This document shows, piece by piece, positions 8,801 through 41,168 of a stretch of DNA of 64,000 bases (position 1 is its first letter; each line of letters begins with the position of its first letter). The position numbers and the translations under genes are program-made. The stretch lies in contig OZ059899.1 of NCBI GenBank assembly GCA_964057225.1, positions 8,308,001 to 8,372,000 on the forward strand. Reading direction: 5' to 3'. The notes under the pieces were generated by a model. The model did not search any database, had not been told where the DNA came from, and was given only the letters and a program-made list of their open reading frames with translations. The stretch comes from Auanema rhodensis. Its lineage: Eukaryota; Animalia; Nematoda.

Positions 8801-10691
8801 TCTATTCACTTTCCTCTTTCCGTTTGCAATGCTTGTCCGGCATTTGAATTTGGCAATGACTTCAATTCTTGGGAAAATCTGCCTGAAATGGTCTAGAAAC
8901 TGAAGATATTGAAGATATATACATGTTTGTATTCAGCTGTTAATCTGAGTATCTAATGCTATATACTTAAGTTAGTATACAACAATTATAAAATAATATA
9001 TTTAACTTATAAATGTTGCGATGAGTAAATCATAAATTTGAATTCAAAGAACCAAAAAGTTCATTTTTCGTTGTTATAAGATGCAGAAATCTACGTGCTA
9101 TATGTACATACATATATGTATATATTTATCTATTATTGTATTATATTATACTTATGTATAGTATAATTATAATATAGATTCTCTATGCTTTACATTAATC
9201 TTATCTGAAAACGGTGCTTTACATATGTAACATTATCTGAATAGAAGACTAATTGTATTGACTGGTTATATCATACATGAAAAAGCTATATATGTAATTA
9301 GTATGATATTCAACATTATCACAAATAGTAAAATATAAAATTTATAATTTTTATAAATATTTCTAGGATTATTAATGGATTTTTCATCAATATTTTCTTT
9401 TTTTATAGACAGTATGGAACGAAATGTGCTGCATGTGAACGAATGATTCAATCAACTGATTGGGTTAGAAGAGCACGATTATATGTATTTCATTTAGCTT
9501 GTTTTGCCTGCAATCAATGTAAACGGTATATATTAAAATTCAATTTTATTATAATTCCCCCGTTTTATTTTTTTTTCATTTACTTTTAAACTTTCAGACA
9601 GTTATCAACTGGTGAAGAATTTGCTTTGCAAGATTCAAGGCTTCTCTGTAAACAGCATTTTGTTGAATTAGTTGAGGGAGAAAGTGGTATGAGCTTAAAA
9701 TAAAATATTATAATAGTTTATATTTAAATATGTTATTTCAGGCCAGCAAAAACAAAAAACAAAACGAGTTAGGACAACGTTTGCCGAAGAGCAGCTCAGT
9801 GTTTTACAAGTAAGCTTGAAAAGAATCAAAATCCTATAAATGTTTTTATTCAAAAAATTGTAGGCTCATTTTCAAATTGATAGTAATCCTGATGGTGCTG
9901 ATCTTGAACGAATTGCGAATATGACAGGATTAAGTAAACGAGTAACTCAAGTTTGGTTTCAGGTAAAGTATTTTAATATATAAACTTATTTAATCAAATA
10001 ACCTTAAACCTATTGGTAATGAAGTGATTGAACCTATGATGTATGACCAGTTGACGTGAATACATAATTTATATTTTATCACAAAAAAAAACAAAACTTC
10101 ATTGAAGTTAGTTAGTTGGAAAATTAAAAAAAACTAGATAAAAGCCACACCCGGTATTTTCATTAGATAAGCGCCGAATCCTCGTTAATTTTGATCAAGA
10201 CAAAGCGAGGACGATGAGAAGAAAATTTTCGCACCACAGCCTCGAGAGATACATACTTCTCCCCTATGACTTTAATAGCAAGGTCATATCCTAGAAGGTT
10301 TTCCTAAATTTGAAACAAAATTTTTTTCCAAAATTCAGTAAAAAGGTTTAACCCCAATGATTGACGCCTACTTCATCATTTTCAGAATTCGCGAGCTCGA
10401 CAGAAGAAATACCAAGGTGGAAGAAAGGGTGGAGAGAGTGGCCCAGACAGTCAACGCTCTTCAATTGGTCCAACTAGTCCGAAAAGCGAAAATAGTAGTG
10501 ATGACATGATATACCCAACATCCGTCACCACTGGGTATGTTTCATAAAAAAATCTTTTAAAGATTTAACAAGTTTTTCAAAATTCCTGTTAGATATGAAA
10601 ATATTAACACCTTCAATGTTTCAGGAGTGACGATATAATGATGAGTGAGACACCAACTGCAGCTGCCCTAGCTTCACTTCACTATGATTAA
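5898..10691 (+). CDS. lim-4: LIM-homeodomain transcription factor, Arrowhead/Lhx6-8 class (LIM-4 orthologue), 9 exons, ~339 aa
   Basis: Exons 5898-6146, 6340-6410, 6486-6596, 9409-9525, 9598-9686, 9742-9809, 9864-9962, 10386-10534 and 10625-10691 join in frame at GT-AG sites. Two LIM domains ([11 protein letters not shown]...[11 protein letters not shown]; [43 protein letters not shown]) and a homeodomain ([21 protein letters not shown]...[17 protein letters not shown]) closely match C. elegans LIM-4 as recalled. Start could alternatively be ATG 6105. Confidence 0.93.
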
Positions 10692-11958: not shown

Positions 11959-12688
11959 TTGAGTAAGTAAGAAAGAAGGAGAAAGTATGCGCTCTATAAG
12001 ACCACCCAATACCAACACTCTAACTATATGCCTTTATACCGTATGCTAATATTCAAGTTGGAACATATAGCAATAAAGTATATTATATACATGTCGATGT
12101 TGCAATTTTTTCTCAAATTCTTCACTTCATTCATTCAAATTTCCTGTCTTGTTCATTAATTGAACTGTTGATGATTTGGATGAAAGAAAGCATACATACA
12201 TTGCCAAAATGATTGATTGAAATAGCGAAGAGATATGATAAAATTTAACTTTTTTTCTTTTATATTGACAAAAAGAAATTAAAATCATTGATCAATGAAT
12301 ATTCTTAAACTATATATTATACGTATGCATATAATTTATTGTTAATCAGTATTATATTACAGGAGACACATTATTTTGTTTTTCTTTTTTAAAATTTTAT
12401 TGTCATCATCTTTTGGTTTAAATTGTTGTGTTATTGGGTTAGAAGACAGAGAGGGGGTGTTAGTTAGTTTCGAATTGATTAATTTTATAAGACGAAAGAA
12501 GAAAAAAAGAAGAAGTATCTCTCGACCCCGGTAAGGCTGTGTGGACGGCAGCACATGCAAATTCGTCTACAACCAGTTTTTCATACTCTAACTATCGTCT
12601 TTTCAACCCTTTTGTGCTAGTCAAATCAACCTACCACTTCTTCCTTCGTAACCACCCCCCCCCTCACACCTTTCTCTCTGTATTTCCC

Positions 12689-12694
<6 letters not shown>

Positions 12695-12744
<50 letters not shown>
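12695..12744. repeat. (CT)25 microsatellite within a pyrimidine-rich stretch
   Basis: Direct reading of the sequence. Confidence 0.95.
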
Positions 12745-12755
<11 letters not shown>

Positions 12756-15700
12756 GGCTCTCTGTTTATGTCTCTCTGCTACTTATTTCTCTCTTAAATT
12801 TTGAAAAACTCTTTCCTTTTTATTCCTTTTTTACAATATTGTCAACAATCCAAAATTATTTATTCAATTTGATATAAACACATAAAATGTTTATAATGAT
12901 ATATTAACGGAAGCATATCTATACCAGTTTATACAATTGTATTTTTTGACCAAATTATTTTGAAAAATAATTAAATAATCAGAAACTGAAAGATATGCAT
13001 GGATTATCAGATTATTAGAATGTTCAAAGTGGTGACAAGAAAAAAATAAATCATTTTAGCTGATCCATTTGATCAGAACAGGAATACTTGGAGCGCACAT
13101 CATCAATATTGCTCGAATTAGCAAGGCAAGTTGCTTCAGCATTTGTTTTAAATAAAGAAAAAATTATCAAGAATATTGCTTATTTTCATAAAAGTAACTG
13201 TAATCCATTCGCCTAACTATTCAGGAAAAAATCGAATTCGTTGTTTAACCGTCATACAGTAACGGAATCAGTCTTATGTTAGGAATGCCACATTTCCGAT
13301 TTTTCCTGATTTTCAAGTTATCAGTTGAATTATTATTTTCCTTTTGAAAACCCAGAACATGATGATGAGACTGCATCAGTAGCTAAAACATCTCATGTTT
13401 TTCTCCCCGCTCCATTCCAAACACTAGAATAAGTTGGTAAATTTTTTTTCTTTTTTTTCCCTAAAGTTGTGGCAACTTGATTGATGTGCAATCGAATCAA
13501 CTTATCAATATATGAATAGTCACAGGATACAAATTAAGATCATTTTCCAACTTCAGGTTTTCAATACAATTAGTCAATTTTACAGAATATTATATAAGTA
13601 TTATTTAAATTTATTATCATCATTTATAAATGATATTGAATACCATAACGAATATCCAAACAACGAGTCTGTATATCCGTGCTGTGCTACAATCCACCAA
13701 ACCCCCCCCCCATCCTACAACACACTTCGAGTCTCCTTTTGAAATGATCTTATCGTTTTTTCGACGACAAAATAGAACAAGCTTCTCCTAAACACTGAAA
13801 GCATCAGTTTCGAAAATTTAATGAAATGATGGAAAATTATCATTCGATTTACACGTTTTTCATTATAAATATATATTTTTTGTTTTTATTTAACAGCTTC
13901 TAATCGAAAAGCTTTTTCCCCGTCATACTTTTATCAGAAAAATTAACCTAAATACTAAAATTGTACTTTGTTTTCTATTAGAAGAAAAGCGATTGCGATA
14001 ACAATTTGTTGAAATTTTACTGTTACAATCAATTAAGAATATTTGATAAATGATTATGAATTTAATTGGAATGAACGGCCGTGATTAGATATTAAATTTT
14101 ATCATTCAAGTTATCTTACTTCAAAGCTTTTTTTGGCATTTTTCTCGCATAAGGCTTGGTTTTCACTAAAATAGTTGGACAGTTTGATTTAGTAGTTGTA
14201 CTTCTTCCTGCTTTTTTATAAAAAAATTTAAATTTTCATAGAGTTTCCTATTTGTTGCATTTAGAACTTAATCATATTAGCTTCACGTACGTAAAGACAC
14301 GTTATGAATTCTCCGCTACATTTTCCAACTTTAATCGCCTCTGCACGGTCTATTCTTTATATTTCTCTCTGTCTCCTCATATATTTTTTTCTTATTCTTT
14401 CAGAAAAATTCTTTTTCTCTCAATTTCCCTTTGAAAATCCTTTCTTTTCATCGTTTTTCCCTCCTCAATTGACAAAAATCAGACGCACGGCAAGCAGTAG
14501 TAGCACCAGCCGGTATGCAAATAATCATCAACCAAGCCAAGCTGCTGTTTCTCTATTCCACTCACCCTAGTTCATCATCTTTCACCTTCATCATCATCTA
14601 ACTATTCCTCACTCTTCATTCATCTCTCACATTTTTTCGTTTTTCTTTCTGCTACTCATAGCTAGCCCTTGCAATACTCCCGCATGACATTGTGCCTTTT
14701 CGACTTCTTTCCATCTCTTCTACTCAGCACCATTCTGTACCTAACCTTTTGATCTTCTATTGCTGTTCCACTCTCTACTTTTTCCAAACTAACTATCCAC
14801 CAGTCTTTCCCACCTTCTGATGCTGATCATTATAATATTAGCAGCATCTCTCTCCACAGCCATGTAACCACCCCCCCCCCCCAATATCTAATCTCTCTCT
14901 CCTCATTATATCAGATCCGAATTTCTTACTGCTTTTTTAGTGAAACATTGAATGTATGTATGCTATCTTAATATATATATATATATATACATAATGCGTC
15001 TATAATTTTATGTTTATTGTAAGACTCTTTCATCATCTCAACTAACTTTTCTTCCGATTTCATTACTACTCATCTCTCTTTACTTGTCCGTCATCCATTT
15101 TTTCTGCCATTCTACAATACAAATATAATATATTGTTCTTTTCTTCATTGTTATTGTTATTTTCAAATACTTTTTATGAGCTTAATCTAAATCAGTATTT
15201 AAGAAAGTATATAAATATAAATGAATTGTAAGATGCACCATATTTTGCCAATACATTCCTTGTGAAAGTCGTAAAAGAATTCGTCCCAAAACCCATTTCT
15301 TTTCTTAAATAATTTGAAACATTCAAAGATCGTTTGAAAATGTCTTTAATTAGCTTTTTTAAGCGTTTTGATTGACTCGGAAACAAGCTGGCGCCGAAAT
15401 TATTAGATGAAGAGAGGATTTTCATCTCTTTTCTCTATCTATAACACTTATATCTGTATGTATGCATATAATATAAAACTGTTTTCTCAAAATGATCAAT
15501 TATATTGAAAATGCTACAAAAAATTAAAATAAAAATAAATTTTTATTCATATTTACTCTGCAAAAACTTTTGTTCTCCAATATTATTTTGATCAAGTTCA
15601 GAGAATTGAACTATACGTGCACATGCAAAGCTGATTTTTCTCTAATTAGTTGTTAATTTTCCAAAAACAATTTTATTTAGTTATTTTTTTTAAATTTTGA

Positions 15701-18700
15701 GTTTTGCCGCACTTAGTAATTAGTTGTTCAATCGTGATTCTCTATTTTTTCTTGTTTCGGATAATATTATATTTGATGAAACTGCTGAATAAATAATCAA
15801 CAACATTGAATAATTGTTTGAAAAAAAGAACGAATTATTAGTTTATCATATTCCCATCAGCTTCATTTTATATAAAAATTAAAATTTTTGGAAGGGGGTA
15901 CGTAACCAACGTATATGAGAAAATTGTAGATAGCGAAGCTGCATAAGCTAATTAAACTAATTAATAATCATAGCTTGAGGCTATGATTCTATCATGTTAA
16001 CTTAATAACTTGCACTTTCAACACTGTACGTAAAAGGACAAGTTCCAGATGCATTTGTATCTAACGGCTTCGTCTGTATTTTAACTGTCTCAAGTGCAAA
16101 TTCCAGTTCTATTCCATTTTAATGCCCCCTTGATCATCCGTTTTTAATATCCGAAAACATACCATCTTATATGAATATTTTAAATTTTTACTTTTTTTTG
16201 ATCATATGTTTAATAATAATTATATTTAATTTATATGTATATTTTACTATGTAACCAGTTTCATCGTACAGTATGTCGAAGCTTCTGATAGAACTTTTCT
16301 TTCGAAAACGTGTTGTGGTCATGAAAGTCGAAAAATCTTAAAGAATTTAATAGATCGGGAAAAAAAGACAAAACGGTACGTAACTATAAAATCCAATTGG
16401 AATTAAACGTTTTTCCGCATTTCAAACTTCTTGCTTAGGGTACTCATAGATTACAATTATAGTTTCAACAAATTCCAAAATTTAAACTAATATCATATAT
16501 AAATATTTAAGAAAATAAGTATAAATAATTCCTCTTTTTTTATTTATTATATGATATGTAATTTAAACAATTTGCATATTCACTTGAGAGTGCACGTGAA
16601 AACTCACGTGTGTTGCATGGCAACCCTCTCAATTGAGCTTTTTTTTCTTTTCGGAACGGTTGTGTGTATGAGAGAGATCCACCATTTTTAATTTTTTTTC
16701 ACAAATTTTCGGATTATTTTTCAAATCTTTAACGTTGTTTTCATTGGCATAAAGCGTTTTTTATTTGTTCTTCCTTTCGATCTATTATGATCAAATTTTA
16801 ATGAAAAAAAATCTTTTTTTTTTTAATACATAATTCAAAATCAATTATTAGCTATGGCCTTCATTAAGCTCACATTAACAATCATTTCTTCATATTTTGT
16901 TATGCTTATCAATTCATCAATTTTTTCCTTCAATTTATCAATTATAATCAGTATATTCACATTAATATACATATCTTCTCAGTTCATAATATAAACTATT
17001 TTATGCAGAAAATCAAAAAAATAATTGAATATACAATTTTTAAAATTTTTGTATCATTTTGAGCAATCAAAATTAAACTAATGTTCAGCTTTGTCATCAC
17101 ATCATTCATGCTTATTTCATGTGTATATGTTATATACATATGTATATCTATATCTATATATACTATTTATAATATATACTATATATTATGTAATCTATGA
17201 ATTCTCTTTTCATATCGTTTCATCTATTCGTTTCAATTTTATTTAAGTTCAAATAATTAATTTGTTTATTTATTCAATTATTAAATATTTTTCCTTTATT
17301 TGTGTTTATAGTCATCTAATAACAATTTATTTTGACCATTTTTCACGATTTTCCTGCTTTCATTTCTCATTTTCTATCTATACACTAACTTTCTGCCATC
17401 TAGTTGACAGGAACTCTAGACTATACAGGCTTGATCAAATTACCAAGCAAACAATTTCACTTAGCCGACAATTCAAGAAAATAAAAAGAATAGAAAAAAT
17501 TCTATTTCTTTTTCAAAAAGTTAAATTTTGTAATTTTATGTACCATACTGTGCTTAGTCATGAATTGTGATTCAGAACTATGTATAGAGTAATGACAATT
17601 ATTCACGAAAATATAAACTATGCATAATATAAGCTATTATTTTCGAATCCAAATTACGGTTCTAAATTATTTTGCAATGTCCACCATCATCATCAAATGT
17701 ATACATCTATCTTTTACCCCCCCCCCACCCCTCTTCTTTCTGTCTCTCTCTTTTGCTGTCTGAATCTTCAAACTTAATACTACAATAGTTGATTTAAATT
17801 AGTATTTCTTATTGTAAATCGATGTTTTGAACTTTTAAAAGAGAAAAAACTACTTACAAAGTCTTTCCTTTTTCTAACATCTTCAAGTCATTTTCTTAAT
17901 AGAACAATAGGTATTTATTCGTTTCGCTAGCAAACATACCATCATGGGTTCTTCAGACACCCACAATTTCTCTTACCAACATCAACGTTATCGTCGTCGT
18001 CACTGACGTCTTTGCCGTTAACGTTGGCATCGATGCTTGTGTCTTTAACTCTTTCAATTCTGTCTTCTAATTCCATTATAGATAGTTTTAATTATGTCAT
18101 TATGTTAAATTATAATAATTTTTTACGTAACAACGCACAATATCGTTAACTAATTTTGAAAGAAATTATTTTTTTGCTCAACATTCTGATATTTCTATAC
18201 AATTTGTATTTGATTTTATGTGTTCTTATTTGACTACTCAAAACGACAAGAAAATCAACTGTAACAACATTTCTTGGTAAAAATTTTTGACTATTCAACT
18301 CTTTTATGAATATGAATAGCAAATTTTAAATAAATATTCTTCTAACATATCATAAACTGACGTCAACTTTATATTGTCGGGAACGAAGCACGAAGTCTAT
18401 TTGATATTCGAAAGTTTACATAAAATTTTCTTTTCTCGCTCTACTCTGGTTCTTTTATAATCGACCGAGACCGAGATGTTCATGTATTCTTCTTCTGTAG
18501 AACACGACGACGTCAACGAGGACGATGATGGCGACAGACGACGTCGTGTATCTTCTCGTTTAGTTATGACTCTAGTAGTATGCTTATTTAACATTACTCA
18601 TTCAGTTTATTTACTTGTTTATAATAAGGAGAGATTGAGAGAGTATAACAAGAAGTATCTTCTTCATTTTATTATTATATTGATTTTACATATTAGTTTT

Positions 18701-21700
18701 CATGAAGATATTATCTAATAGTTTGTTGAATCGAAGGCCTAAAAACTGAGAAAAATATGAAATGCTTCTTAGGCTTGACTTTTCCCTCCTACCTCATCAT
18801 CTAACGTTCTGACTCTTTCCATTGACTGTCAGCCAATATTCGCTCGGTATATGAGCTGAAAACCGGTCATAGAGAAAACGAGGGATTGAAAGAGTACGAG
18901 AGAGAGCGAGACAGATAGAGAGAGAAAAGGAACGAATTTAGAAGAAATATACATACAAAGAGAGGTGTTGGTTGGGGGAGTGGTGCTACAGACTTGCCGT
19001 CAGAGTAAATTCATCGGCACAGGAAATGCAGAGTATGAAATACTGAGAGAAAGAGAAAGATAGAGAGTGGCAGATAGAGAGAAACTAAGAGAAGCGAGTG
19101 AACGAATGAGAAAAAAACGGCTGACAGGCTCTATGCTTTAACTTAGTTGGATCGAATATAGATTTTTCGTTCTCTAATTGTTTCGACGTCACGATTTCTG
19201 ACCTCCTATGCATATATATATGCTACTTTAAATATTCATAATCATATTTCAGTTATTTCTTAGTAATTTACTGTAATATTTCATTTTTAAGAAAACATTT
19301 TAATCTTCTTAGCATATTTCTCTGACTATATGTTATGAAAACGGAGGATGAAAGGAAATCAAAGACAGATTGAACCTTCAGAAAATTGTTTATTCCTAGG
19401 CAATCTGCCAAAAAAAGCGTATACTATATATACATATGTATATAATAATTTATTCTTTTTTTTCTTCATTCAATCATCCTAACCGTTCTCTTCATAACAT
19501 ATTATATGATTTTTCTAGTCAACAAACTATTCACGCTTTTCAATCTTTATTGATTTCTAATTCTACACATATGTATATGTATATATACATAATATGTATA
19601 TATGTATATGTATAATACATTATACGTATTCTTTATTATATAGAATATATATATAGATAGATATAGATAGATAGATAGATATATTTGTATCTTTTTTTCA
19701 ACAAACAACAATCAAATGAACTATGAAAGCATAACTACTTATCCCTCCCTTATCATAGTTCATTCTATAGTTTCTAGATTATTTCTTTTTTTAATTGACC
19801 AATATATCTGAAAGATTAAATAACAAAGCTGAAAATTACCTAGATTATTGAAACCAACATTAATAGTATACACAAAGAAGATGAAAGTTCAGAATATTTC
19901 AACGTCATAAACGCTTATTTGTGATGTATTAGTGATAGATGGTAATTTGATAAAATTTGAGGTCATAATCACGAATACTTTTGAAAATGAACATTGCATT
20001 TTCTTTCAAAAAAGAAAAGAAAAGAAAAATCAAATACGATAGACAACTTATTTGGACACATTCATACATACATCACTCCCTGTTTGGGTATTTATCCCAT
20101 TTTCTAAACAATCTTTTCTCGTATCATACAGTTTGAGCTCATTCTTCACGACTTTTTCAATAAAAATCGCCGCAAAAAAAAACGTTTTTTCCGTCAACTT
20201 CACCGTCCACACTCTCCACTTGTCGATTCTTCAGCTGATCCGGTCTATTAAATAAATCCAAATATACGTTATTGCTCTTCTGTCCTTGCAAATAATTGAT
20301 TGCTATCTTAATCAGGAGTTAAATCTTTTATGAATTTGCCAACATACCGTTTCCTTTTTTTCTCTCATTTCTCTTTTCAATTCACCTTTTTTGAAATTTT
20401 AATCAATATGCTGCTGTAACTTTTCAAAAATCTATCATCTTGCCCTAGATAATTTCTAAATTCATTATTATTACTGTGATTTCGACTGTTTCACACAGTT
20501 CTTGCATCATTAATATAAAGAACATTCTGTTAAATAAGTTATAGAAATATAGATAAAATTGAAGGTATAATCAATTACAATATATCTCAATTATAAATCT
20601 TTTTTTAATTAATTATATTAACTATTACGTTGAAACTAACATATTTTTATATTTATTTAACTCCATTCTTTTATTCTATGGTTTTCAGTTAGTTTTCATT
20701 TCTTGTTTCATTCGGTTTACTTCCCCTTTTTTTCTCTTTTACATTTTTATATATTCGTCTCAGTCTGCTCTCTCCCTCTCTCTTCATGTGTGTGTTAAGT
20801 ATTTTCATACCTTTTCCTTCAATTTTAATATTACTTTTCTGTGGGGGGCCAAATGTCAGGTCTGATAAGCAAAAAAGGCAAATTGAATAGCTAAATTTTC
20901 AATTCGTTCATTCATTTCTTTGTGTTTCTTTTATAAACCTATTTGACATCGCATATGCATATCACATTCTTGGACTGTAAAACAAACTGATAAATTTGAA
21001 TAGATCATAAGAATAATTAAATTATTTTTATAGTTAAATAATCTTTCAAATTATTATTAATTTTTTTACCAATTATAATGAATTACAATTCTGAGATGTT
21101 TTTGATGGAATTACAGAAGATGATGATGATGATGATGATGGAGTAAGATGATAATGAGTTTGAGCTGTTTATCTTCGACAACACGCAAAGACTGATTGTA
21201 GAGGAAGAAAGAAGGAGAAGATGAGGAGGTTGTTTAAGCAAATAGCTTAAGCAAAAATGACGTTGAGTATCTAGAATATAGCTGGTATCTTTCTTCATTT
21301 TCCTCATTTTTTGAAGATTTTTAATTCTTCAATTGAATACAGATATTCACTTTCTTGATAGCAATCGTTACATTAAATTGCTATTTGAAAGTCATCTCAT
21401 CGAAAGCTATATAAAAATGTTTTTGATTACTATGCGAAGACATTTCTTTTTGAAACATTAAATATATATGTATATATATTTAATGAATAACTTGTGTATA
21501 TTTCCGTCTGAATTTCATAATGTTATAGCCATTGGGTTACATTTTTCTTTCAACCGATTAATTTTTAAACGTATTCATAACTGAATTAAGTTATTATGAA
21601 TTTATTAATACTTCCGGTTTTTTATTTATTAATAATTATTCTTTTCAATTTACAGTCTACCTGACTAAATTGATGTTCTAGGTGTCCATATAAATTAGAA

Positions 21701-24700
21701 AACTGTGCAAAACTTCGAGTCTGAGTAAACATTTTGCATTTTCTATCTAATATATGAATGAATAAAATAGGGGGGGGGGGTTGTTTGTTCTTATCTAAAC
21801 ATGTTGAATACTGATTAAAACTTGTCTTCAATATATGTTATTGAAGTTATTTTCTGTGGCTTTTTAACCCACAAATGCAAAATTATTTATTTGTAATTAG
21901 AATAGTTTTTATATTCCATAATAACATCATCTAATCTCTAGCAGTCTTTTAATCTTGTTCTCTCTTCTTTTCCGTTCTTTTTCCCGGTGAATTCAACTGT
22001 TCAAAAAGCTATTTCATTTGCCTATTTTAATTTGTTCATACGTTGAACTATTTTCATTGATATCATCAGTTTATCTGCGAAAAAAATTCATTATTTATTT
22101 AATTGATTTTTCAAAAATTATATAAAAATATATATTTATATACATATATGTATATAAAGAACATTTTATAGAAGAGATAGGAAAATAGATGTAAGAGAGA
22201 AAATTAAAATATTTTTCAGAATATAAAAATTACTCGTTTTCACTTTAAACTTTAAACTTAATGACATTATTGTCAAACATTATAACAATATGTATATATA
22301 AATATTTATATAACTAGAATATATATACTATATACTATATATATTTCTATATTTCTATATTATATATATAACTATATATATATATATATATATATATTCA
22401 TTTATTACTTAATTACTTAATTAGTTAAATAATATTTATATTTAGGATAACATTATAAAGTTTTGATTTAATGTATGTGTGTGCAAATGATGAATTATAT
22501 AAACACAGAAGAGGTAGGAAATTAACTCTCAATGCATTTTTGAATTTGTTTTATCAAGATATTGTGGCCGAAGTTTGAAAATAAAAAAATCTGAACAAAT
22601 ACATGACTATATGGACCAGACTGATTAAAATTCTTCAAACTAAGCTGAAGGTTTCTCTATTAGTCGTGTATACTCATCAGCATTTTGCTTTCAAACTTTA
22701 ATACTACTATTGATTAATAATAAAACTTTCGCGTTATTTTAACACAATTTTCGAATATAATTTAAGGTAATTTACAAAATTTATGTAGATTGGAATGCTC
22801 ATATCTAAATCATTCTTATTTTCGTTTCTGTTTCATCGACTTCTCTTCTATTACCTCATTGTTTCTTTTTTTTTGTTTCTTTCATTCGACTCTATCTCTC
22901 TCTCTTTCTCTCTCTTCCTGGTTTTCTCTTCCCGGTTTGTTCTTTTCTTTCTTTTCCTCCATTTTTCCGCAATAATGATTTTAAATCATTATCACTTTAT
23001 CACCTTTCCACTTTATACTTTATATGGTCTAATGTACATATGCATACATTTATATTTTTGAATAAGCTCAGATTATATTTTTTTTTAATTTATTTTTAAA
23101 CCATGTATATTATGTTTAAAATAATAATGAGAAAGTTTGAATCATATATGATATGAGAATCATATATCGATTTCTGTTGAATGGCTCTTTGTAATTTGAA
23201 TACACCAACAGACAGGCCCCCCTTTTTTGAATTTCTGGAGTCTTTCACCCGCTCTTCTTCCACGTCGACCTTCTAGTCTCGATCATTATCACACACATAC
23301 ACATGTACACATACACACAGAAAAAATTTGCTTTTTTTTAATTTGAATCAAATATATTTCGTTTCGCAGTTTAATCAGAATAATCTTTGTTGATTTCAGC
23401 ATTTTTTTTATTGATGAGGCATTTGTAGGAAATCTTGATATCTCTATTATCTAACTTACACAAAACTTTTATGATATGGTTTATGTAAAACGAAATAAGA
23501 ACATTCAATGAATAATCTGAATAGGCTGACTGATATTTATAAGTTTTCGTATTTTAGTTGTAGTTGTCTTGCATTCTTCAGTGAATTCTGTGCTCATAAG
23601 AAGAGAGAGAGATGCTTTAAACATAAGAGAATGAAAATTCCATCAACCTTTCTCCAAATTTTCCGGCTATTTGGATTGATTTGCATAAGTGAAAGAGCTA
23701 TTCTTTTATTTTATATGAGCTATATATGCACCTTCTCTTATTCTAACATTTACCTTGTCCATTTGGAAATAGAAGAAAAACGATGCTCCTCACTCTGATT
23801 CTCTCTCTCTTTTCAGGTTTCTAATTTAGCGTTAATTTCTCTCTTTTCTCTCTTCGTCTCTCTCTCTTTCTCCCATAAACATTTATTTTCATTGCTTACT
23901 ACTTTCAACTTCTTTTTACTTCTCCGGCTTCTTCCTGATATCACAAGTTTCTTCTGGTTTTGTGTCTCATTATTGTTCTTATTGCTTCAGACACGTTAGA
24001 GCAGCATATTATCACTAGCTTAACGCACTGAAAGATGTTCGCATTCAACGACCATGCTATTTTTTTTTCTTTTTCTAATTTTGAACTAACAAAAATTAGT
24101 TTGTCTCACATTTTTGGAAAATAGTTATGTTGAAATAAGTCAAAATTACTACAATAGGTTATCTTATCAATGTTCAGTTTCAATTATTCCAATTTTTAAT
24201 TTCCAAAAATCAAAATTCAAAAGAAAAAGTTTATTGATAGGTTATGTAAGAAGAATAATCAAAAATAATAGAATAGCCAAATGTGAGAAAGATAAAGTAA
24301 ATGTTATAGAATGAATTAAGATAATACATGTCGAAGTCTTCTTCATCAAACAGTACAATGTGAAAATTCTTCTTCTTTTTTTTTTGAATTGTGAGATTAA
24401 TTTAGAGAAGAATCTTGATTTTCGATACAAAGATATATATTACGATATGAATGTATTTTATCTTATAACATTAGCTTTCTTTCTCATTCTTTGCTTCGTC
24501 TTCATCTTACAATTTGCTTTTGCAACCTCATCAATCCTACATAAAACCATCAGCTGTTTTCAATCAGCCATTTGCATGATAGAAACCTACTGATTTTAGA
24601 ATCATCACATATACTGATGAAGAATTTGTGTGAGAGAAAGAGAAAGAGAGAGAGTCAGAAAAGAAGAATGAACAAATGCACAAAAACCAGAACCTTTTCG

Positions 24701-27119
24701 TCTTCATCTTTTCATTTTCACTTTTTTTTCTTCTATGAAGGATCCACATAATGACTAGGCTATTTTTTCGCAATCAGTTGGCCAATTTTCATTTCATTTG
24801 GTGCCGGGCACCACCTGATCCAACAGCCGTCTCTTTTCTGCCTACATTATGCCTTCAGGCAATTTTCTGCTGTCTTCTTCCAGTTAGCTTGTTCGGTTAA
24901 CTTCCTTAAGTTTCCCTTGATTTCAAAATACGGCTATGAGATGAGCTTGGATAGGCTCAAAATGCCAGACGTACCAACAATGGATTTGAAAATATACAAC
25001 GTTCAGCAATTTGCATTGTGTTTGTCTATACAACACTGTTGTTCTTATACAGATACAATACAGTTTCAAAGAAATCATATTTGGTCTAATTGATCTTAGT
25101 TCTACTCTCAAGCTGCTTATCGCCTTCGTTATATCCATCATTCTAAAATACAAAAACAGCTTCAATTCCTCTTTTTTTTATAAAAACTAAAACATTTGCA
25201 TTGCATAAACATAAAACAAAGTTTTCCACAATCGGGATGAGATAACAACTTTAAGAAAATCATTTGAAATGTGAATGAGTGTTAATAGGACTATTCATGT
25301 CCATTCATGAAAGAGTATTGGACAAATTTACATGTTCGACAACACGGTTCTCTCTTTACCGTCAACTCCAATCTACTGATTATCAATTGTATGAAAACTT
25401 CTGTTATCATCTCGAGTTTCCAACAAACAGCTTGTAAATAATTTCCTTATATATGATCAAACAGTATTATGCAAAAAAAAATTTCCTGTTCCATTTCCTT
25501 CTACCCGATTGTAAGCCGAATGTTTTCATAACATGACGGATCATCTTATAACAGTAGAGTACTAAACAGACTTTCTTAAATAATTTTAAAAACATTAACA
25601 ATGAAATACATTAATCTATTTTGTCAAAAACACAATTTAACAAATTAGATGAGCAAAAAAATTTATCAATTGACCTACACAAACTACATTTGCGCCTGAT
25701 ATTCTTTAGCTCAAACTATAATTAACCTGATTATGTGTAAGAAAAGAAAATTAAACAGCTTGCTGTTTTTTCATTTAAGAATTACGACATTAGTTCGTTT
25801 AGTAATAAACTGATAAACTAAGCCTAACTAAATTAACATGGTTTTTTTTTTTCAAAAGATAGAATTATTAGAATTTTTTACATAAACTCTAATTGCCAGA
25901 AATATATTGTTGAACCTCTATTTCTCTCTCTCTCTTTCCCTCTTTCTCTCTTTCTCCTTTCTCTCACACACACATTCCTTTTTTTCCTAACTCCTAACCA
26001 AAGGCGAATGAAATGCATACTGCCAACAAGTTCTCTGATGGCTATTGGTCGAATGTCATTTAGTAAGATTAATTCTCAGATAGCAAAGTTGGCACTTTTA
26101 TTTTTCTTTTTTTACTATCACGATTAAAGTTTTACCTCGGATGTTCTATTGACCCACGTTGTTCCGTTTTTAAAATTCTTCTGATCTTTACATAAGCTTC
26201 AATATTTAGCTCAATTAGTCTCGAGTTCAAAAATCAAAACCGTTATTCCTTCTATGTGCATACCTTTCATTCGATTTTTTAATCAATCACTTTATCGCTT
26301 GATTTATTAATTTTAAATATAATTAATTGAAATATAATATGTGTATATAAATACATTTTTTTCACACTTCGCCTAATGAAACGAGTACGGCTGTTTCCAC
26401 TCATCCTGCTCCCAGCCAAAGTTTTTCGGAATCTTTAACGCTATCTAACAATTTTCGATCAACTTTACCTTGATGTTATCTTTTTTCCTTTTGCATGCAA
26501 TATTGAGCTTTTCTTACCTTCTTATATACATAATATTAATATGAATTTCTTGTATAGTTTTATTTAGTTTTAATATTCATAATAAGTTTTTCAAAATCAT
26601 TAAGTCAAATGCGTGCAATACGTGAACTTTATTATTGAAATTAATGCCAACGCAATGCTGTTGGTTATATGATATAACCATTTAGTGTAGGGCAAGATCA
26701 GTGAGCGGTTGTATGCACATCAATCATTTGACAATATTTTTCATTTTTCTATTAGATTCCTATATGTTGTTTGAATTTTTTTCCGTTAGATCAATGTATT
26801 TGCATGAATCAAGTTTTAAAATTAGAATTTTAAAAGAAAAAAGTAAAGATGGTCCTAGTTGTACTCATTCACTGTCAGAGAAAAATGAATTGTGATATTC
26901 AAGATGAAAGACGTGAATTGAGAAAGCACAACTGCTTGGTGGACGTTTATCTGTTATCAATTCATTTCGCCGACCATATGCATATATTTATATATTTGTC
27001 TCTCTTTGTATGTTTATTTAATCGATGTTTTGTCAGCTATCGAGGAAATCAGACGGGGAAAATGAAGAGAGACTGTAGAAAAAAAGTGAAATTGAAATCA
27101 AAAGAAGTGGGGAGAGGAG

Positions 27120-27251
27120 GAAAGAGAGTCTGAAAGAGAGACTGAAAGAGAGACTGAAAGAGAGACTGAAAAAGAGTCTGAAAGAGAGACGGAAATAGAG
27201 ACTGAAAGAGAGACTGAAAGAGAGTCTGAAAGAGAGATTGAAAGAGAGAAT
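27120..27251. repeat. 12-bp minisatellite (GAAAGAGAGACT) x ~11
   Basis: Eleven consecutive units, each with 0-2 substitutions. Explains the spurious QSLF-repeat ORF at 27049-27303. Confidence 0.95.
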
Positions 27252-30200
27252 GAGAAAAATAGCTTGAAATATTGAAAAAGAGCAGAAGGGACTGTTTCCG
27301 CATACAGGACTTCGTATTACCCTGAAATCATAAAATCAACTTCGAGCAGCAAGAGTGAACTAAGGGGAGAGAGTGGAGTATGGTGGCAATTAAAAATTCG
27401 TGATTTGGTTTTTTTGGATATAATTGAATCAAATTTAATCACTGTGAGAAAGCTGATTCCAGCCCTGGAAATAACAAGAAAGAGGTAGAAGAAGAAAAAT
27501 TTTTGTATACAATAAAACTCAACCAATTTCTTAAATACCAATGGTTGTGGACATTGAAGTATATCTGAACTATTTAAAAATCAAAAACATAATTATCATC
27601 TTTGAGGTTTGCTTGATATTTAATCGGCTAATAGAAAAACTCATAAAATGGCAAAAGATGAAGAAATACATTTATCTGTATGACTCAAATGCACGCAAAT
27701 TAGTGATAAAGGAAGCTAAACTCACGAAATTTCTTCTGTTCCAACATGATGGAAATTCATTTCCGATTTCTGCTATATGCATGTAATATTCCGTGATATT
27801 AAACTTTTTCGTTATCATTTTTCAAAAACGGCTTATCTCAAGTTCAACAAGCTTTTGCCTCTTCAAAAGAGTCCTAGATCAATCATGTTTCTATTGTTTA
27901 AATAGATCGAAGATTCTCACTCTCTTCTCTGTTTCTCATTTTTTCTAATGTCTCTTGCTTGATGTTCATCTTATTTTTTAACTTCTTCTCTTTCAGGATC
28001 AGTGTGTAGCTTCTTGTTGTTTAAAAGAAGAAGAAAAAGAGTCAAATGAATGGTCTTTGTTCATAATTCTTCCTATTTTTTAATAAACTATAATGGTCAA
28101 GTTGATTTCAAATAATTTTGTCTTCAGAATGGAGTTTGTCATCTACCTACTTGCTTTTATGCAGAATCCTATCGGTTCTTGGTAGCTTTGCCGCTCTGTC
28201 ATCTATCAATGTTCTAGTATTCTTTCTCTCTATATCCCTCCTTACTCGCGCCTTCTCTTTCTCTCATTTTTTTTCTCGTATTCCTCTTTATATTTCGCAT
28301 TATCTACCGTTCCTATTTTCTATATCTATTTAAGCATAGTCCTACATTCAAAATACAGAGAAAAACTATATTTTTGAAATATCAGTTCTATGAAAAATCA
28401 GTTATAGTTTACGTACTGGCTAAGCTCAAATAACCACTTATGGTACACAATTCTTTTTCACACGGTGCCTCTTCCATCTTTTATTGGAACAGTTGATTTT
28501 AGCTCATCAATTTGTATAAACAGTCCAATTTAATTATACATAATATCTCTTAAATTTTCTAAATTTTCCTTCCTTCTCTCATTTTCTCACTAACACATCA
28601 CCTGAAAACATTAATTTTATTATTAACCTGTTCTTTGTCGACGAATAGATACCGTATCATCACTCATAATAATATTAAATCAAAATGTCCATAACAAACT
28701 TTCATATAAGAACGTAAATAACTAATTTTAAGCTCTCTTTCTCTCATTTACTTTCTCTTTCTCTCACACCAGCACTCCCTCTTCTACTCTTTTTTTCTCT
28801 CTTCCTCTACTCTCTCTTTCTTTCTTATGTTCTCTAGTATCCCGTTACTCTCTCTCGCTCGATCTTACTGTCTCATTCTCTTCACCAATACAGCTATATT
28901 CCCTCTTCCTAGCATTTTTTCTTTTATTCTCTGTTAACGTTATCATTTAGTATATTTTCATTAACACGTCTTTCATTTTTTTTCTCATTCGTTTTCCAGT
29001 TTAATGGTTTTTTAAGTCCCTTCATTCGGCTCGCCATTAGCTATGGTCCATTGTTTAAACCGGAACTTTGCTCACAGTTTCACATATGCAATACTGAATA
29101 TTGAAATTCAAGATTTTCCTTATAAGGTCATATTGAAACAGCTTATCCTGAACTATAAGAACCGGTAAAATCTTTATCTCCTCACTAATGTGGTCTCAAA
29201 GTTCGTTGTTGTAAAAAAAGATGAAAGTTTAAGATATAGAACGATAATAAATGAATTTCCTGCCGCCTACCAAATAGTTGGTCGATCCCCTTCTACCCAT
29301 AACACATCCTAGGCTCTAAGAACCAATCCCTCTTCCATCTTCCATTACAATCTGTTGTCTCTTCATTTCTTTGCATTTTTTTTTTCATCTTTTTTTTTCA
29401 GTTTTCATATTCAGTTCAATATATTATCGTTTTATCCTCTATTTTGCTCGAAGACCACCTTACGCCTTGGCCTCGCAATTCTATTTTCTTTGGTATTTGT
29501 AACACAACATATCAATTTCAACTATTCTTTTTGGCAAAGACTATTCCAATGCTAGCTCCCTGAATGTGTAAACCCCATTTACAGCATGTGTTTTGCAACC
29601 TTTGTTTGCAACTTTCATGTTTAAGTTTGTAAATGTTTTATTCAAATTCGTGAATCTTTTGTGATTATCCCATTTAAATTTTCCCAGATTTTACAGATTT
29701 TTTACCGTAGTTTTTCATTCATCTTGCCTCATACGCCAACTGAGTCATATTTTATTCCATTTCTACAATAGAACGTTCGGCTTCATTCAAATCAGCCCCA
29801 GCTGCGCATATTCCCCTCTCTGCTGACCTCTCGAACTTGCTTTATCAAGTTTTTTGCGAATTGTCTAAGAAAAGCTTCAAATATGCGTATAATTCATTAC
29901 TTGATATTTATAAAATAATAGCTTATCATACATTTGTTCTATGCTGTACTGATAATCAACTTTAAACCTAATGGAGCTGTTCTCCATGAAAAATGATTAT
30001 ATTAGAATAATCTTCATTATTTGATAACATTTAATTTGACGCTTTTATTTTTTATTCTCAGGAAATTTATATTACTAAAAAACTCAATTCTCCTATATCA
30101 CTGCAGTATAAAACTGTTCGTACTTCACTGTATAAGCTCGCTTTTCGTTATTGAAGTAAACTATCTACAAAGATCATAAATAGTCAATCTTATCTCATTT

Positions 30201-32056
30201 TTTGCAATGAATCCTACGTCTCTATATCAATTCAGTGCCCTTGATTCCAAATCCTTAACGTCATCATTTCGACAGCCGTAACGTTCATACAACATAGTAT
30301 CCTCTCCGGAAATCAGCTTCATCTCCGTCAATCTATTAAACCTGATATATGGACTATAACTTAAACTTTCAAATTTGGAATTCATTTATTTCTGAAATGA
30401 GAATGAAATCAAAATTTATTTCATCAATCGAAGTTTTGATAAAATTCTTCAATGCTGATTGATATTGTAGTAAGCTCAGCTTGGAAATCCAGAAAGTTTA
30501 ACTCATCAAGGTTTTTCCCTTTATTCTCTGTGTATGTTATATGAGAAATGGAGGGTGTGGACAAGTGAATTAATCAATATAATTTGAAAAACAAAATGAT
30601 CAAGTTATGCATCAATGACTATTGATACTTCTCTCTTCTCTCTCCCTCTCTCTTTCTTTTTATCGTCACTTTTCTCTCCCTATTTCTTTTCAACTTTTCG
30701 TTCGTTTTCTCTCAATTTCTTCCAGTTTCCATGCATGGCAGTTATTTAGGTTGGGTAACTTTGGGCAGGGCTTGGGACAACAATTGAAACTGTCGGTCCG
30801 GTTTCACACCAATTCGTCCTACTCGCTTTGTCTCGTTGTCGAGCTATAGGACCATCAACATCATTACCACCATTAAAATTACAAACATCTTTTCAATTAA
30901 CATAGGCAACTTTTTGCTTCATTTTCGATTCTTCAGTCAATATTTAACTTTTTCATTTTGATTTTTGAAATCACTTCCCTTCCCCCAAAAATTTCAATAT
31001 TCGCTATATAGAATATGATATTTTACAGTTTGTTCAATATTATTTGCTTCTCAAATAGTTACAATCAAAACGAGATTTGAATTTTCGATATACGTAATGT
31101 GTTGTATGACTAGAAAAATATTCTACTTTATAGATATTTTCTCTTTTTTTCATATCTCTAATATCATCATCATTATAAACATTCTTAATGAGAAAACATT
31201 AGAGAAACGCCGAACGTCGTGGTTGTTCAATAGGCTCATCATCTACTTAGGCATACCTCCTCTAAAAACTTGCATTTTTTTGTAGCAACATATGTATCCT
31301 TATAAACTGTTTATAAATATAGATACGGATGAGTGTTAGATATTATAGTATATCTATTCATGTGTTTATATTTATTTTTATATTATTGCTAATCCCTCAT
31401 TAATATCACATATATATTTTTTTAAAAAATCAATTTGTATAAGCTGATATAACTAATCAGATCATCATCATCATTCACACAGACACTCATACACATACAC
31501 ACACAACGACATGCACCGCTTCATTCAGATACATAGTCTACTATCTATTATTCCAAATCCTCTTTTCCACTGAAATCTAGTTCTCTTTCTATTTTTCTCG
31601 TCGTTGACTAACTATTAATATCTATATATCCTCATCTATCTTTTCAACTATGATTACCAAATATGATGTATGAATATTCAGTTCAATTATCTGAAAATGA
31701 AAAAAATTCAGTTTGATTTCGAAAAATGGAGTAGAACTTATTTAGATCATATTTTGTCATTATTATTTCATTAAGCTTAAGTTCTAAAAAAATTCAAATT
31801 CTTTGACCTATACGCCATACATGCAGTTTATCTAAGTCACCATATTTGTGTCAACAACAAGCAACCCAAACTACATTTTCATATTTATAAAAAATCGAAA
31901 TTTATCCCAAAAATATTCCAAAAAGAGCCAATGGCATAGCTACTTTGTTAGTTTTCAAAAAAACTAAAATTTTAACGACCGGAAGCGTTTATTGGTCCAG
32001 ATCGCTGATCAAACTAGAAAGTATAGTCAGGAGGATTGCCTAATATGGCTATTGAG

Positions 32057-32261
32057 ATTTGCATTCAGTTCATTTTCTCTCGCGATTATCGACATCCTTT
32101 AGGGATATTGATTGATTTGCATTTTAATTACTTAATTATTTAAATATAGGTGTTAGGAATAACTTGCATTTCATTTTCAATCTTTCTTTCAATTTACATA
32201 GTTATAGCCCTCATTTGCATATGGAGCTTTTAGCAACTTTTTCCTTAAATTGTATGCAAAT
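32057..32261. promoter_or_regulatory. Cluster of four perfect POU octamer sites upstream of ceh-18
   Basis: ATTTGCAT at 32057, 32115 and 32213; ATGCAAAT at 32254; near-match ACTTGCAT at 32162. Confidence 0.6.
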
Positions 32262-33989: not shown

Positions 33990-36900
33990 ATGCACCATGA
34001 GATTCCGGAGAGTTTGTCAAATCAGGGTAAGCTAAATTAATGTTTTTTTTTTCGTTTTTTTGCCAAGTTTTCAATATGTTTGTTTTATATTCAAGCTTTA
34101 GGGTCGCCATCTCCCTCAAATGTCCAAGTACGAATCAGTCCCACAGGGTCCAGTAAACGAAAAAGTCGCCCGGTTAAACGTATAATAGACATAGATGTGA
34201 GTTTTTAGTTATTTTTTTATACTCCCTTTCTAAATTTTTTCAAAATCGTTTTTGTGGAAATGAATTTTTTTCCTGAAAAGTGAGATGAAATGTCTAGTAA
34301 AGTTCTAGAGTTACAAACTTTTGCAATAACCAAAACGACGAGTCAATGAATTAACGTTGAAACCCTCTGTTTGTCATTAGCGAATTCTTTTGCAGTCACT
34401 GAGCAATGATCATGATTTTCCTTATTAAGAATTTCAAGAACTATGCGCTTTGTTATTAATATGTTATCGTTTAAGCAGCTCTCTGTTAATCGGCTAGGCG
34501 TAAATGATACTTTATTTCATGTTTATTGGCATTTTATTTTTCCTATTATGCAACATATTTGTGTTTAATTATTCCTTTTTATGGTACATTTACACATCTC
34601 TCAGTGTTTCAATATGAGAAAATGTGAAGTAATGCTTAAGCTAGATTTACTAATTCCTATGCTCTTTATGTGGAATGATTAAAATGAGCTCCTGTCAATG
34701 CTTACTTTGTTTTTCTTCTGCAAAGCTTGATGACCTTTTGCGGACAGGGCAAGATATGCTCTTTATATTAGTACCAGTCGTTTGGTAGTAAGTTTGAATT
34801 ACAGGTCATTAACCCACGAGTTTGTATTATTAGCCAGCGCGTTCGTGTAAGTAATTTTCTTTGGCAGAACAACTATCATATTTCTAGAGACGATTCCTGA
34901 AAAAGTTGATTGATTCTAGCGAAATTTCCTTAAGCCCCTTTTTTTCTTTTTCGATTTCATTCTTTCGGTGTTTCTGTTCAATCGGGACCGATCTAGTGCT
35001 CTTCCAAACCAGCTGCATTCTCTCAGCTTCCACACCCTTAGCCCTTTTTGTGACTCTCTTTCAATCTCCCTTTTTCTCGTTCACTCACTCTTATTCCCTC
35101 TCATTTCAATTTTCTTTTCTTCGTCTCCTTTCTCTCCCTCTTGCTCTCACCAGCAACCAACCAGCCAGGAATCGATATGTGCTTTTGCATAATCAGGCCA
35201 TCCACACCAGAATATGCTGTTGTGTCTCAGCTGTCATGTCCATAAAACATAGCTTTCATTTACATAGCTGAATTAAATTTTACCTATAAATGCGAGAAGA
35301 AAGTTATAGGACACTGATTTAAGTTATCCTGAACCAATTGATTTCCATAAGCTTTTAATTTGTAACTGTTATGTGAATCTAATATTAGTTTTAAAGTTGA
35401 ATGCTTTTTCATAGAAGCCTTTATTCAAATTTAATTCTCGAGGATGATAGCAATCTTTGGTGAAAAGTCAGAAATGTAAAAAAAATTTCGATTCTGGACA
35501 TTTGAAAGAAGTGCCGCTGACGCTTCGTATTTCATTTCAACCTAATCATTCTTGGCCACCCATAACCTAATACTTAAAATTCTGCTGATTTGATTAAGTA
35601 AACACTCTTTTATATAAGCATTGCTTACGCCGAACGCATATTCATTTCAATTCTGGTGGCTTATTCTTCCTTTTTTCCTTCTTCATTTTTGAATCATTAT
35701 ATCCATATTGCTCCTACATCATTTCCTGAATTTTTTTCACCTCTTAATGTAAGAGTTTTCATGTTAAGTTTCAAATATCCTAGTCGATCTGCTTTTGTTG
35801 CTTAATCTCATTCAAAGTGTATTGCAAGCATGCTCTACATGATTTCTTCCGATAATTGGGCATATAACTGGGGAATTAAAAAAGGGAAATAGCAATAAGA
35901 GAGCCACAAAATAAAAGATTGCGTACCACAAAGCGTAACTCGGCCAGTGCTAGGTTTTTTTCTTTTTCATCACATTTTTTCTTTATTTTATGCATTCTGG
36001 ATTCATTAATTTACATATATTGTGGTTACAGGAAGAATCAGGAGAATCTAGTTCAATGCAGATGACGTCAGATGGAGTTCATACAAGTGAAATTTGCGAC
36101 ATGAAACCTTCTATTGCAAGTGATTGCTCTTCTGAAGACGTAAATGTAGAAGTCGCCTCCATAGTAGCCAAAATGGTAGAAGAAGAACCAAGGTGAGCAT
36201 TTTAGCATAACTGAAATTTATATTTGCTCAAACTGAAAATGACATCTAGCATAGTTTACCGTTGATTCTATGCCACATGTCTGCTTAAAGTGCACGAGTT
36301 TGGTCGAAAATGACAGTTTTGTCTTAAAAATATTTTCACTTTTAACATGAATACAAAAATCAGATTTTAATAGTTTTTCAAATTTTGATGTTGATGAAAC
36401 TTCCTGTGAAGAATTTCTTGAACTACTAAAAAATGTTTAGAAAAAGTTTTGTATGCATCAGTTTTACTTACCTGATATCCATTTTGTTCAAATTTCGTCA
36501 ATATTCAGATAGCTTGCGTGTGTGATCGGCTGCGCTGAATAGTATGGCTGTTGAATATCTATTTTTAATTTTGAACTTTTAATTAGGATACTGTCTTATG
36601 CTCAATCGAAGCTTTTGTAAAGCCGTTTGGGAATCCCGATTCAATGTTGTGGTATGATTGTATAATTATATCCCAAACTGTTGAAAGTTGAATAGCGTGA
36701 GTAGTGTTGTTGTATCATAATCGGCTCAGTTCAATTATATGGGGTTTATGCATGCATCCCAGATTTTTCATTCCCACGTAGTCATCGCCTCCCGTTAGGA
36801 TTTTTGTTTAATTATTCTTTATAGTTTATATTTTTTACATTTTGGAATAGTTTAACCATATTTCCTCTTTGTTCTTCATTGCCATATTTTTGGGGCGAAA

Positions 36901-38025: not shown

Positions 38026-38068
<43 letters not shown>

Positions 38069-40424: not shown

Positions 40425-41168
40425 ATGAAGTATATAATTATTTTATGTGCAACTATTTTATCTCTATCCCAAGCAACAAGACTAGAAAGAGCTTCTGATC
40501 TAGACGTTCCATCAAACGTTCAAAATAGGTACCTACCTTTTAAGAAAAATTCAATAAAACAAATAATGTTCAGATCGATTTCTATCAAAGGCCACTTTCT
40601 ATGCGAAGGCAAACCATTTGACAATGTCAAAGTGCGGATCTTTAGAGATTATCAAAAAAATGGAGCTGATGGTATGTGGCATAACTAAGACTATGAATTC
40701 AATTTAAACAGAACTCGCTCAACTTGTAAGCTCCAAGAAGGCATTTGCTGGAGCGTTTCAATTGGATGGAAATACCGGAAGGTAGTAAAAACTAAAAAGT
40801 AAAAAATAAAATTATAAATAAGCTCAAACATAGATTCCCCCCCACACAAACAGAACTGCGTCCTTACGTTACAGTTCATCACAATTGCGGAATGGATGAG
40901 AAGACAACTGCTAATGTATGTTTAGCCTATAATTTTATTTTCTATACAGTTCATCACTTTCTTTATTATAGAAAGGATTCAAAAGATGGGCATTTTCGAT
41001 TCCAGAAAGCTACGTAACTAAGGGACTAAGACCCGAAAAGGTTTATAAACCACTTTTACACTCTCTCCTAATAATACCTTACAGAAGTACGACATGGGGA
41101 CTATTAATCTTCAGCTCCAATATCCTGGTGAAACTCACGACAAGAAATTTAACATGCTTGATCAGTAG
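40425..41168 (+). CDS. Nematode transthyretin-like (TTR/TTL family) secreted protein, 6 exons
   Basis: Signal peptide MKYIIILCATILSLSQA. Family motifs after splicing: SISIKGHFLCEGKPFDNVKVRIF, GAFQLDG, LRPYVTVHHNC, FSIPESYVT, YDMGTINLQLQYPGE. TAG at 41166-41168. Confidence 0.9.

Follow-up and report, generated by a model that had tools for sequence, protein, structure and literature searches.

A 64,000-nucleotide stretch of the genome of the nematode Auanema rhodensis (contig OZ059899.1, positions 8,308,001 to 8,372,000; hereafter the window, numbered from its first letter) was found to carry a strong excess of exact POU octamers (ATGCAAAT/ATTTGCAT) in ~24 kb of intergenic DNA that separates a LIM-homeobox gene from the orthologue of Caenorhabditis elegans ceh-18, a POU homeobox gene of class II. 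Judged from the sequence, these octamers are cis-elements under selection and linked to the POU gene, because the octamer ranks first among 840 words of the same composition both here and in the summed orthologous loci, is average in control DNA, and is conserved in place at several sites. Binding of CEH-18 to sites at its own gene (autoregulation) would be the most economical reading of the array, and is held here with even confidence.

An exact search returned 15 matches to the 8-bp consensus in the window, 12 of them within 12555-32261. These 12 had been listed in an earlier note made from the sequence alone, and all were recovered at the same coordinates and on the same strands; the three further sites given in that note, and its report that 1-12.5 kb is free of exact octamers, were likewise reproduced. 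The sites are as follows.

12555 (+), 14515 (+) and 16570 (-), spanning 12555-16577: distal octamers, scattered.
23679, 24570, 25009, 25194 and 26798, spanning 23679-26805: middle cluster of five exact octamers, all ATTTGCAT on the + strand.
32057 (-), 32115 (-), 32213 (-) and 32254 (+), spanning 32057-32261: proximal homotypic cluster of exact octamers.
32162-32169 (ACTTGCAT) and 32192-32199 (ATTTACAT): one-mismatch copies in the proximal cluster.
39344, 53027 and 55068: octamers outside the interval.

The proximal cluster lies 1.7-1.9 kb 5' of the start codon of the POU gene. The signal is carried by the 5 sites in 23.7-26.8 kb and the 4 sites in 32.06-32.26 kb, and the distal three are not significant on their own. 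The distributed array described earlier keeps its excess and its clustering, and is better described as two clusters plus scattered sites.

The gene 3' of the octamers was identified from Pfam matches above cut-off and from the translations of its exons, which carry the POU signature and place a POU-specific domain ahead of a POU homeodomain.

33990 (start codon) to 38895 (stop), + strand: coding sequence of the class II POU homeobox gene, ceh-18 orthologue.
About 37924-38022, 38081-38164, 38209-38260 and 38301-38385, + strand: exons of the POU-specific domain.
About 38460-38538, 38566-38661 and 38700-38760, + strand: exons of the POU homeodomain.

The Pfam Pou match covers 38081-38164 (35.2 bits, cut-off 27) and the Pfam Homeodomain match covers 38560-38748 (35.4 bits, cut-off 22.9), both on the + strand. 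Exons were compared singly, and a protein of Auanema sp. JU1783 (P0001) was used as a stand-in for the full-length window protein; it is the closest public relative (97% identical over the query exon), its N-terminus is identical to that of the window gene, and the exon order matches too. Against solved relatives, the POU-specific exon scored 42-43 bits with Oct-1/2/11, 32 with class III, 28 with class V and 24 with Pit-1. Over its full length, P0001 is most similar to Caenorhabditis CEH-18 proteins, and its best solved match is Oct-1, against which both recognition helices are intact. On best-match scores and a shared TTR-52 neighbour, the gene is assigned to class II as the ceh-18 orthologue, as the earlier note had proposed. 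In C. elegans, differentiation of the gonadal sheath, arrest of oocytes and the identity of some neurons are under the control of ceh-18. The A. rhodensis genome (181 Mb) holds exactly three POU loci. Ceh-18 was placed in class POU2 by Gold et al. (PMC4245813).

The number of octamers expected in the ~20-kb interval was estimated from several backgrounds. Markov models of orders 0-3 trained on the region gave 1.7-2.5 sites, a 200-kb block of another chromosome gave 1.3 (13 sites, with a maximum of 3 per 20-kb window) and a count over the whole genome (6835 sites, 181 Mb) gave 0.74. The Poisson probability of 12 or more sites is 1e-8 to 3e-11, in a genome with roughly 9,000 such windows. Over the whole window, the count of 15 was compared to dinucleotide shuffles (mean 8.0, standard deviation 2.9), 1 of 100 of which reached 15. 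With the total fixed at 15 sites in 64 kb, the probability of finding 12 in 19.7 kb is 0.003 and that of finding 4 in 197 bp is 0.00015. The octamer was also the most enriched non-simple 8-mer of 12-32.5 kb relative to background DNA (12 vs 1.39, P=3e-8); the words more enriched were all simple sequence (poly-C, GA/CT runs and one 12-bp tandem repeat). Among 840 words of the same composition it ranked 1st in window 12-34 kb (12 vs a mean of 1.5), compared to 355th in the 200-kb control DNA and 205th elsewhere in the window. A significant local excess of one motif over background, one mark of a homotypic cluster, is thus present.

Enrichment of the exact octamer in the interval was 8.6-fold. 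The only enriched one-mismatch variant was ATGCATAT, at 5-fold, and the remaining one-mismatch variants showed no enrichment in the interval. Palindromic ATATGCATAT is scored on both strands, so that the ATGCATAT count corresponds to ~7 distinct places, and some of the ATGCATAT sites adjoin TA-rich simple sequence; for these two reasons the variant was treated as secondary. ATGCATAT is a high-affinity Oct site.

The proximal cluster was compared with the whole genome by searching for pairs of octamers in the same orientation. Pairs with a gap of 20-50 nt occur at 15 places, five of which are copies of one repeat, and pairs with a gap of 70-100 nt occur at 10 places in the 181 Mb; the proximal cluster is the sole locus on both lists. 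By chance, four sites in 205 bp would be expected 5e-4 to 4e-3 times anywhere in the genome. The 401 bp surrounding the cluster match only their own place in the genome, so the cluster is single copy. Repeats as a source of the sites were ruled out, both by Tandem Repeats Finder, which had no hit over any site, and by the unrelated flanks of the sites. The repeat family on the list of 20-50 nt pairs lies on contig 8 (6349218-6402495), where an identical octamer pair 31 nt apart is present in at least 5 copies in 53 kb and makes up one third of the genome-wide matches to that pattern.

Composite elements were also considered. The POU dimer elements MORE (ATGCATATGCAT) and PORE are absent, and Sox-Oct composites, inspected by eye, gave no convincing conserved Sox half-site. 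Two octamers, within 23675-23687 and 32109-32122, have a common extension, ATGCAAATCAATC, which overlaps a PBX-type TGATTGAT; the latter occurs 8 times in 12-33 kb and 7 times in the other 43 kb of the window.

Exact octamers were then counted at eight ceh-18 loci, each taken with 10 kb on either side. Counts are given as upstream, gene and downstream, and the expectation is that of a first-order Markov model for upstream and gene together.

Auanema sp. JU1783 (L025): 7, 2 and 0; expected 1.3.
Pristionchus fissidentatus (L026): 9, 1 and 4; expected 0.6.
Mesorhabditis spiculigera (L028): 2, 6 and 1; expected 1.2.
C. briggsae (L032): 5, 4 and 0; expected 1.75.
Diploscapter pachys (L031): 4, 3 and 1; expected 2.2.
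Cylicocyclus nassatus (L029): 2, 3 and 3; expected 1.8.
C. elegans (L030): 4, 1 and 0; expected 2.7.
C. angaria (L027): 3, 0 and 2; expected 2.4.

Summed over upstream and gene sequence, the eight loci hold 56 octamers vs 14 expected (P=3e-17), or 47 vs 12.7 with JU1783 set aside (P=1e-13). In the permutation control the octamer ranked 1st of 840 words in the summed orthologues with or without JU1783 (56 vs a mean of 7.7 for the eight loci), and locus by locus it ranked 1, 2, 2, 2, 4 and 1 in six loci, 23 in C. elegans and 66 in C. angaria. The 10-kb downstream flanks together hold 11 octamers vs about 7 expected, with a rank of 36 in the permutation control (11 vs a mean of 4.5). The excess is strong in the window, JU1783, Pristionchus, Mesorhabditis and C. 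briggsae. The summed excess and the ranks indicate that octamer excess tracks ceh-18 across lineages whose non-coding DNA cannot be aligned with that of the window, with a strength that differs between lineages. The earlier note had offered its claim for rejection should orthologous loci lack the excess; at the eight loci counted, it recurs in 5-7, and the claim was not refuted. The Pristionchus locus contains two tandem POU plus homeodomain genes (2884-4313 and 10001-16630 of L026), with two octamers 20 bp apart ~0.85 kb 5' of the first POU gene and seven between both genes.

Conservation of individual sites was assessed in two pairs of species. The JU1783 locus is colinear with window 21.65-49 kb, which makes nine octamers testable (the distal three lie in 10.5-21.6 kb, beyond the compared part); conserved non-coding blocks between the two are 70-95% identical. 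By global alignment, 4 of the 9 testable octamers (23679, 24570, 32057 and 32254) are conserved in place, vs 12.3% of all 8-mers (P=0.017), two of them in the following blocks.

23649-23712: conserved non-coding block with octamer 23679, 87.5% identical to JU1783.
24520-24603: conserved non-coding block with octamer 24570, about 90% identical to JU1783.

Site 32115 reads ATTTTAAT in JU1783, where the PBX-type TGATTGAT part at 32109 is kept though the octamer is lost, and site 32213 is not conserved. JU1783 has an octamer ~23 bp (in alignment coordinates) from the position aligned to 26798, which suggests site turnover there, and its region holds two further octamers of its own. In the second pair, C. 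briggsae keeps four of the five C. elegans octamers without any change, vs 8.3% of all 8-mers (P=2e-4). The sites thus show evolutionary constraint, a further mark of a homotypic cluster. The conserved sites are given below (chromosome X, BX284606.5).

X:3858579-3858586, X:3862728-3862735 and X:3865612-3865619: C. elegans octamers conserved in C. briggsae.
X:3852465-3852472: intronic C. elegans octamer conserved in C. briggsae.

The C. elegans octamer at 9158 of L030 lies in a ~70-bp block that is near-identical in C. briggsae, 0.85 kb 5' of the start codon.

The ~24-kb interval 5' of the ceh-18 orthologue is proposed to hold POU-responsive enhancers, namely the 205-bp cluster 1.8 kb from the start codon and the looser cluster 7-10 kb upstream. 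At each exact octamer a class II POU domain would bind as a monomer with high affinity, its POU-specific half reading ATGC and its POU homeodomain AAAT. Other inputs would switch ceh-18 on first; CEH-18 would then occupy the octamers and stabilise its own transcription, and the presence of multiple octamers would give high occupancy and a threshold-like response. Positive autoregulation is the most likely mechanism because the product keeps the DNA-reading helices of Oct-1 and is present wherever the gene is active. The retention of the Oct-1 DNA-contact helices in P0001 is an indirect pointer to octamer binding by the POU domain, and the factor's own motif is found in the cis-regulatory DNA of its own gene, as in an autoregulatory loop. 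From the earlier proposal that CEH-18 or another POU factor feeds back on the locus, the octamer excess, its tie to the locus, its recurrence and its conservation have held up; the identity of the reader and its binding in vivo (CEH-18 as opposed to CEH-6 or another factor), the target gene (ceh-18) and the positive direction are what we infer.

Several observations weigh against autoregulation by CEH-18. The excess is weak in C. elegans (5 vs 2.7 overall, 4 vs 1.3 upstream), as it is in Diploscapter and Cylicocyclus, and is absent at the C. angaria ceh-18 locus; ceh-18 can therefore function without a dense array. In the proximal cluster, even the closest relative lacks conservation at two of the four octamers (32115 and 32213). 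Class III POU proteins, CEH-6 among them, bind octamers as well.

The genes flanking the interval bear on the choice of target and are listed here (coordinates in the window where no other locus is named).

5624-9962, + strand: LIM-homeobox gene of the Lhx2/9 (apterous/ttx-3-like) type, recognized from LIM cysteine patterns in open reading frames and a homeodomain; ends approximate.
Near 6454-6600 and 9443-9520, + strand: LIM exons.
9780-9962, + strand: homeodomain exons of the LIM-homeobox gene.
1-843 of L029 (Cylicocyclus nassatus) and 1-981 of L031 (Diploscapter pachys): LIM-homeobox neighbour upstream.

The Pfam Homeodomain match of the LIM-homeobox gene covers 9852-9962; the best solved relative of its homeodomain exon is Lhx9, and a LIM exon matches the LIM domains of Isl1/CRP. 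On the 3' side, the POU gene is followed by a TTR-52 family gene, importin-alpha (- strand) and syntaxin, in the same order as in JU1783. The arrangement of LIM-homeobox gene (5624-9962), class II POU gene (33990-38895) and TTR-52 gene (40425-40900) on one strand is also present in Diploscapter pachys and Cylicocyclus nassatus, and the POU-TTR-52 pair is common to C. elegans, C. briggsae, JU1783 and Pristionchus as well. The three-gene order may represent a conserved regulatory block.

The main rival to autoregulation, considered unlikely and yet the weightiest of the alternatives, is cross-regulation only, with another POU factor (the class III CEH-6 orthologue or, less likely, UNC-86) reading the octamers and switching ceh-18 on or off, and no feedback from CEH-18. 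The three POU loci of the genome offer such readers, class III POU domains share the ability to bind ATGCAAAT, and site conservation is silent on which protein reads the sites. Set against this, only the exact octamer and ATGCATAT are enriched, which fits the stricter preference of class II better than the looser one of class III, and CEH-18, with its Oct-1 contact helices kept, is necessarily present where the enhancers are active for ceh-18. Service of the octamers to the neighbouring LIM-homeobox gene, or to both genes in a shared regulatory block, is rated improbable. In the window, as in Diploscapter pachys and Cylicocyclus nassatus, that gene is the immediate upstream neighbour and has the same orientation, a conserved linkage that could reflect shared enhancers; the three distal octamers are nearer to it, and POU/LIM-homeodomain partnerships such as UNC-86 with MEC-3 are known. 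The LIM gene is a less likely target, however, because C. elegans, C. briggsae, Pristionchus and Mesorhabditis show the excess with no LIM-homeobox gene called in the 10 kb upstream, and because the excess extends into introns of the POU gene. Moreover, the part of the window that holds the LIM gene (1-12 kb) is without octamers, and the densest cluster lies 1.8 kb from the POU start vs 22 kb from the LIM homeodomain exon.

Reading of the conserved sequence, or of a longer motif that includes the octamer, by a non-POU protein is thought very improbable. The shared ATGCAAATCAATC with its overlapping PBX-type TGATTGAT, and the retention of that flank at 32115 in JU1783 in spite of the lost octamer, would suit such a reader, but the other ten sites have unrelated flanks and the conserved and enriched unit is the 8-mer itself, a textbook POU site. 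Chance or base composition, i.e. AT-rich intergenic DNA in which many copies would arise, is effectively excluded. In its favour, the interval was delimited after the sites had been seen, the + strand is T-rich, which favours ATTTGCAT, and an order-5 Markov model trained on the region predicts 6 sites, a circular estimate; against it stand the top rank among same-composition words, the Poisson probabilities relative to the genome background, the independent replication of the excess at orthologous loci that do not align with the window in their non-coding DNA, and the conservation beyond background in both species pairs. Autoregulation by CEH-18 is thus retained as the preferred reading. Its extension to an ancient rhabditid feature is more tentative, and would leave octamer-mediated self-regulation of the class II POU gene in Caenorhabditis, Auanema, Diploscapter, Mesorhabditis, strongylids and Pristionchus to be kept by site turnover, with the LIM-homeobox/POU/TTR-52 order held by interleaved enhancers as in a genomic regulatory block; this is regarded as possible, with doubt prevailing.

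Other features of the interval were recorded during the analysis.

26881-27085 (93% identical to JU1783) and 27807-28031 (95%): very strongly conserved blocks without octamers, flanking the 12-bp tandem repeat, in surroundings of 70-80% identity.
27120-27253: 12-bp tandem repeat GAAAGAGAGACT, ~11 copies, between the two highly conserved blocks.

No Rfam family was matched in the window, the two blocks included. Both blocks probably represent additional enhancers or else an alternative 5' exon. The one at 27807-28031 ends in a splice-acceptor-like tttcag, and may be such an exon or an enhancer under very strong constraint. The word GTACGTAA/TTACGTAC is present in five copies with unrelated flanks (14287, 15898, 16026, 16376 and 28409) where 0.13 would be expected from background; four of the five copies lie within 2.1 kb, and the word resembles a half-palindromic bZIP (PAR/CES-2-type) site. 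It may form a second homotypic cluster in the distal interval. C or G runs, 8-11 letters long, are found at 12655, 13702, 14871, 17717 and 21770.

The literature was searched for earlier accounts of these elements. A C. elegans ceh-18 promoter fragment that drives gonadal-sheath expression is used as a driver, in a report that does not mention octamers and in which the fragment was not dissected (PMC8626438). The primers of that fragment map to 6685 and 9978-10000 of L030, directly 5' of the C. elegans start codon, so that the fragment holds the proximal C. elegans octamers at 9075 and 9158 of L030. A C. elegans CEH-18 chromatin immunoprecipitation sequencing set exists, according to a citation of modERN in PMC6697445, and an in-vitro motif for CEH-18 is not mentioned in the main text of PMC4434323. 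In the searchable full-text literature, no description of octamers, ATGCAAAT or autoregulation at ceh-18 was found, with unrelated mentions only; the earlier note, whose author was aware of no such description, agrees with this.

Nothing on the cis-regulation of ceh-18 is described in the searchable literature, and candidate conserved elements are now given, including four C. elegans octamers kept in C. briggsae; one conserved C. elegans octamer lies in a promoter fragment already in laboratory use. POU feedback at this locus is a specific hypothesis, supported by conservation and directly testable in C. elegans. The locus also provides a clean natural case of a homotypic cluster in which density is kept across deep nematode divergence as single sites turn over. 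POU autoregulation is a well-known kind of circuit, of which ceh-18 would be a new case; there is little here to surprise a specialist, and the importance is judged moderate.

Autoregulation of Oct-1 (POU2F1) via two octamer sites in an alternative promoter was reported by Pankratova et al. (2006, Biochimie 88:1323), as cited in PMC6057458, and on the strength of that citation offers a precedent for class II POU autoregulation through octamers. As far as that citation goes, Oct-1 and the locus described here have in common a class II POU gene with exact octamers in its own regulatory DNA and a product proposed to bind its own gene. They differ in that the nematode locus has 12 sites in 20 kb, 4 of them in 205 bp, located 1.7-21 kb upstream and not in a promoter, and is supported here by sequence statistics and conservation. 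Positive autoregulation is also a property of other POU genes, including unc-86 of C. elegans, Brn-3a/Pou4f1, Pit-1/Pou1f1 and Oct4/Pou5f1 with their distal enhancers. In these, a POU factor maintains its own expression via upstream enhancers with several of its own sites, as proposed for ceh-18, but the factors belong to classes I, IV and V and have another site consensus, and ceh-18 is of class II. Homotypic clusters of transcription-factor sites in developmental enhancers carry several copies of a motif per few hundred bp. Like them, the array at ceh-18 has some sites that are conserved and others that turn over, with density kept more faithfully than position; such clusters are not a family defined by sequence, and the motif repeated in the window belongs to the class of protein that the adjacent gene itself encodes.

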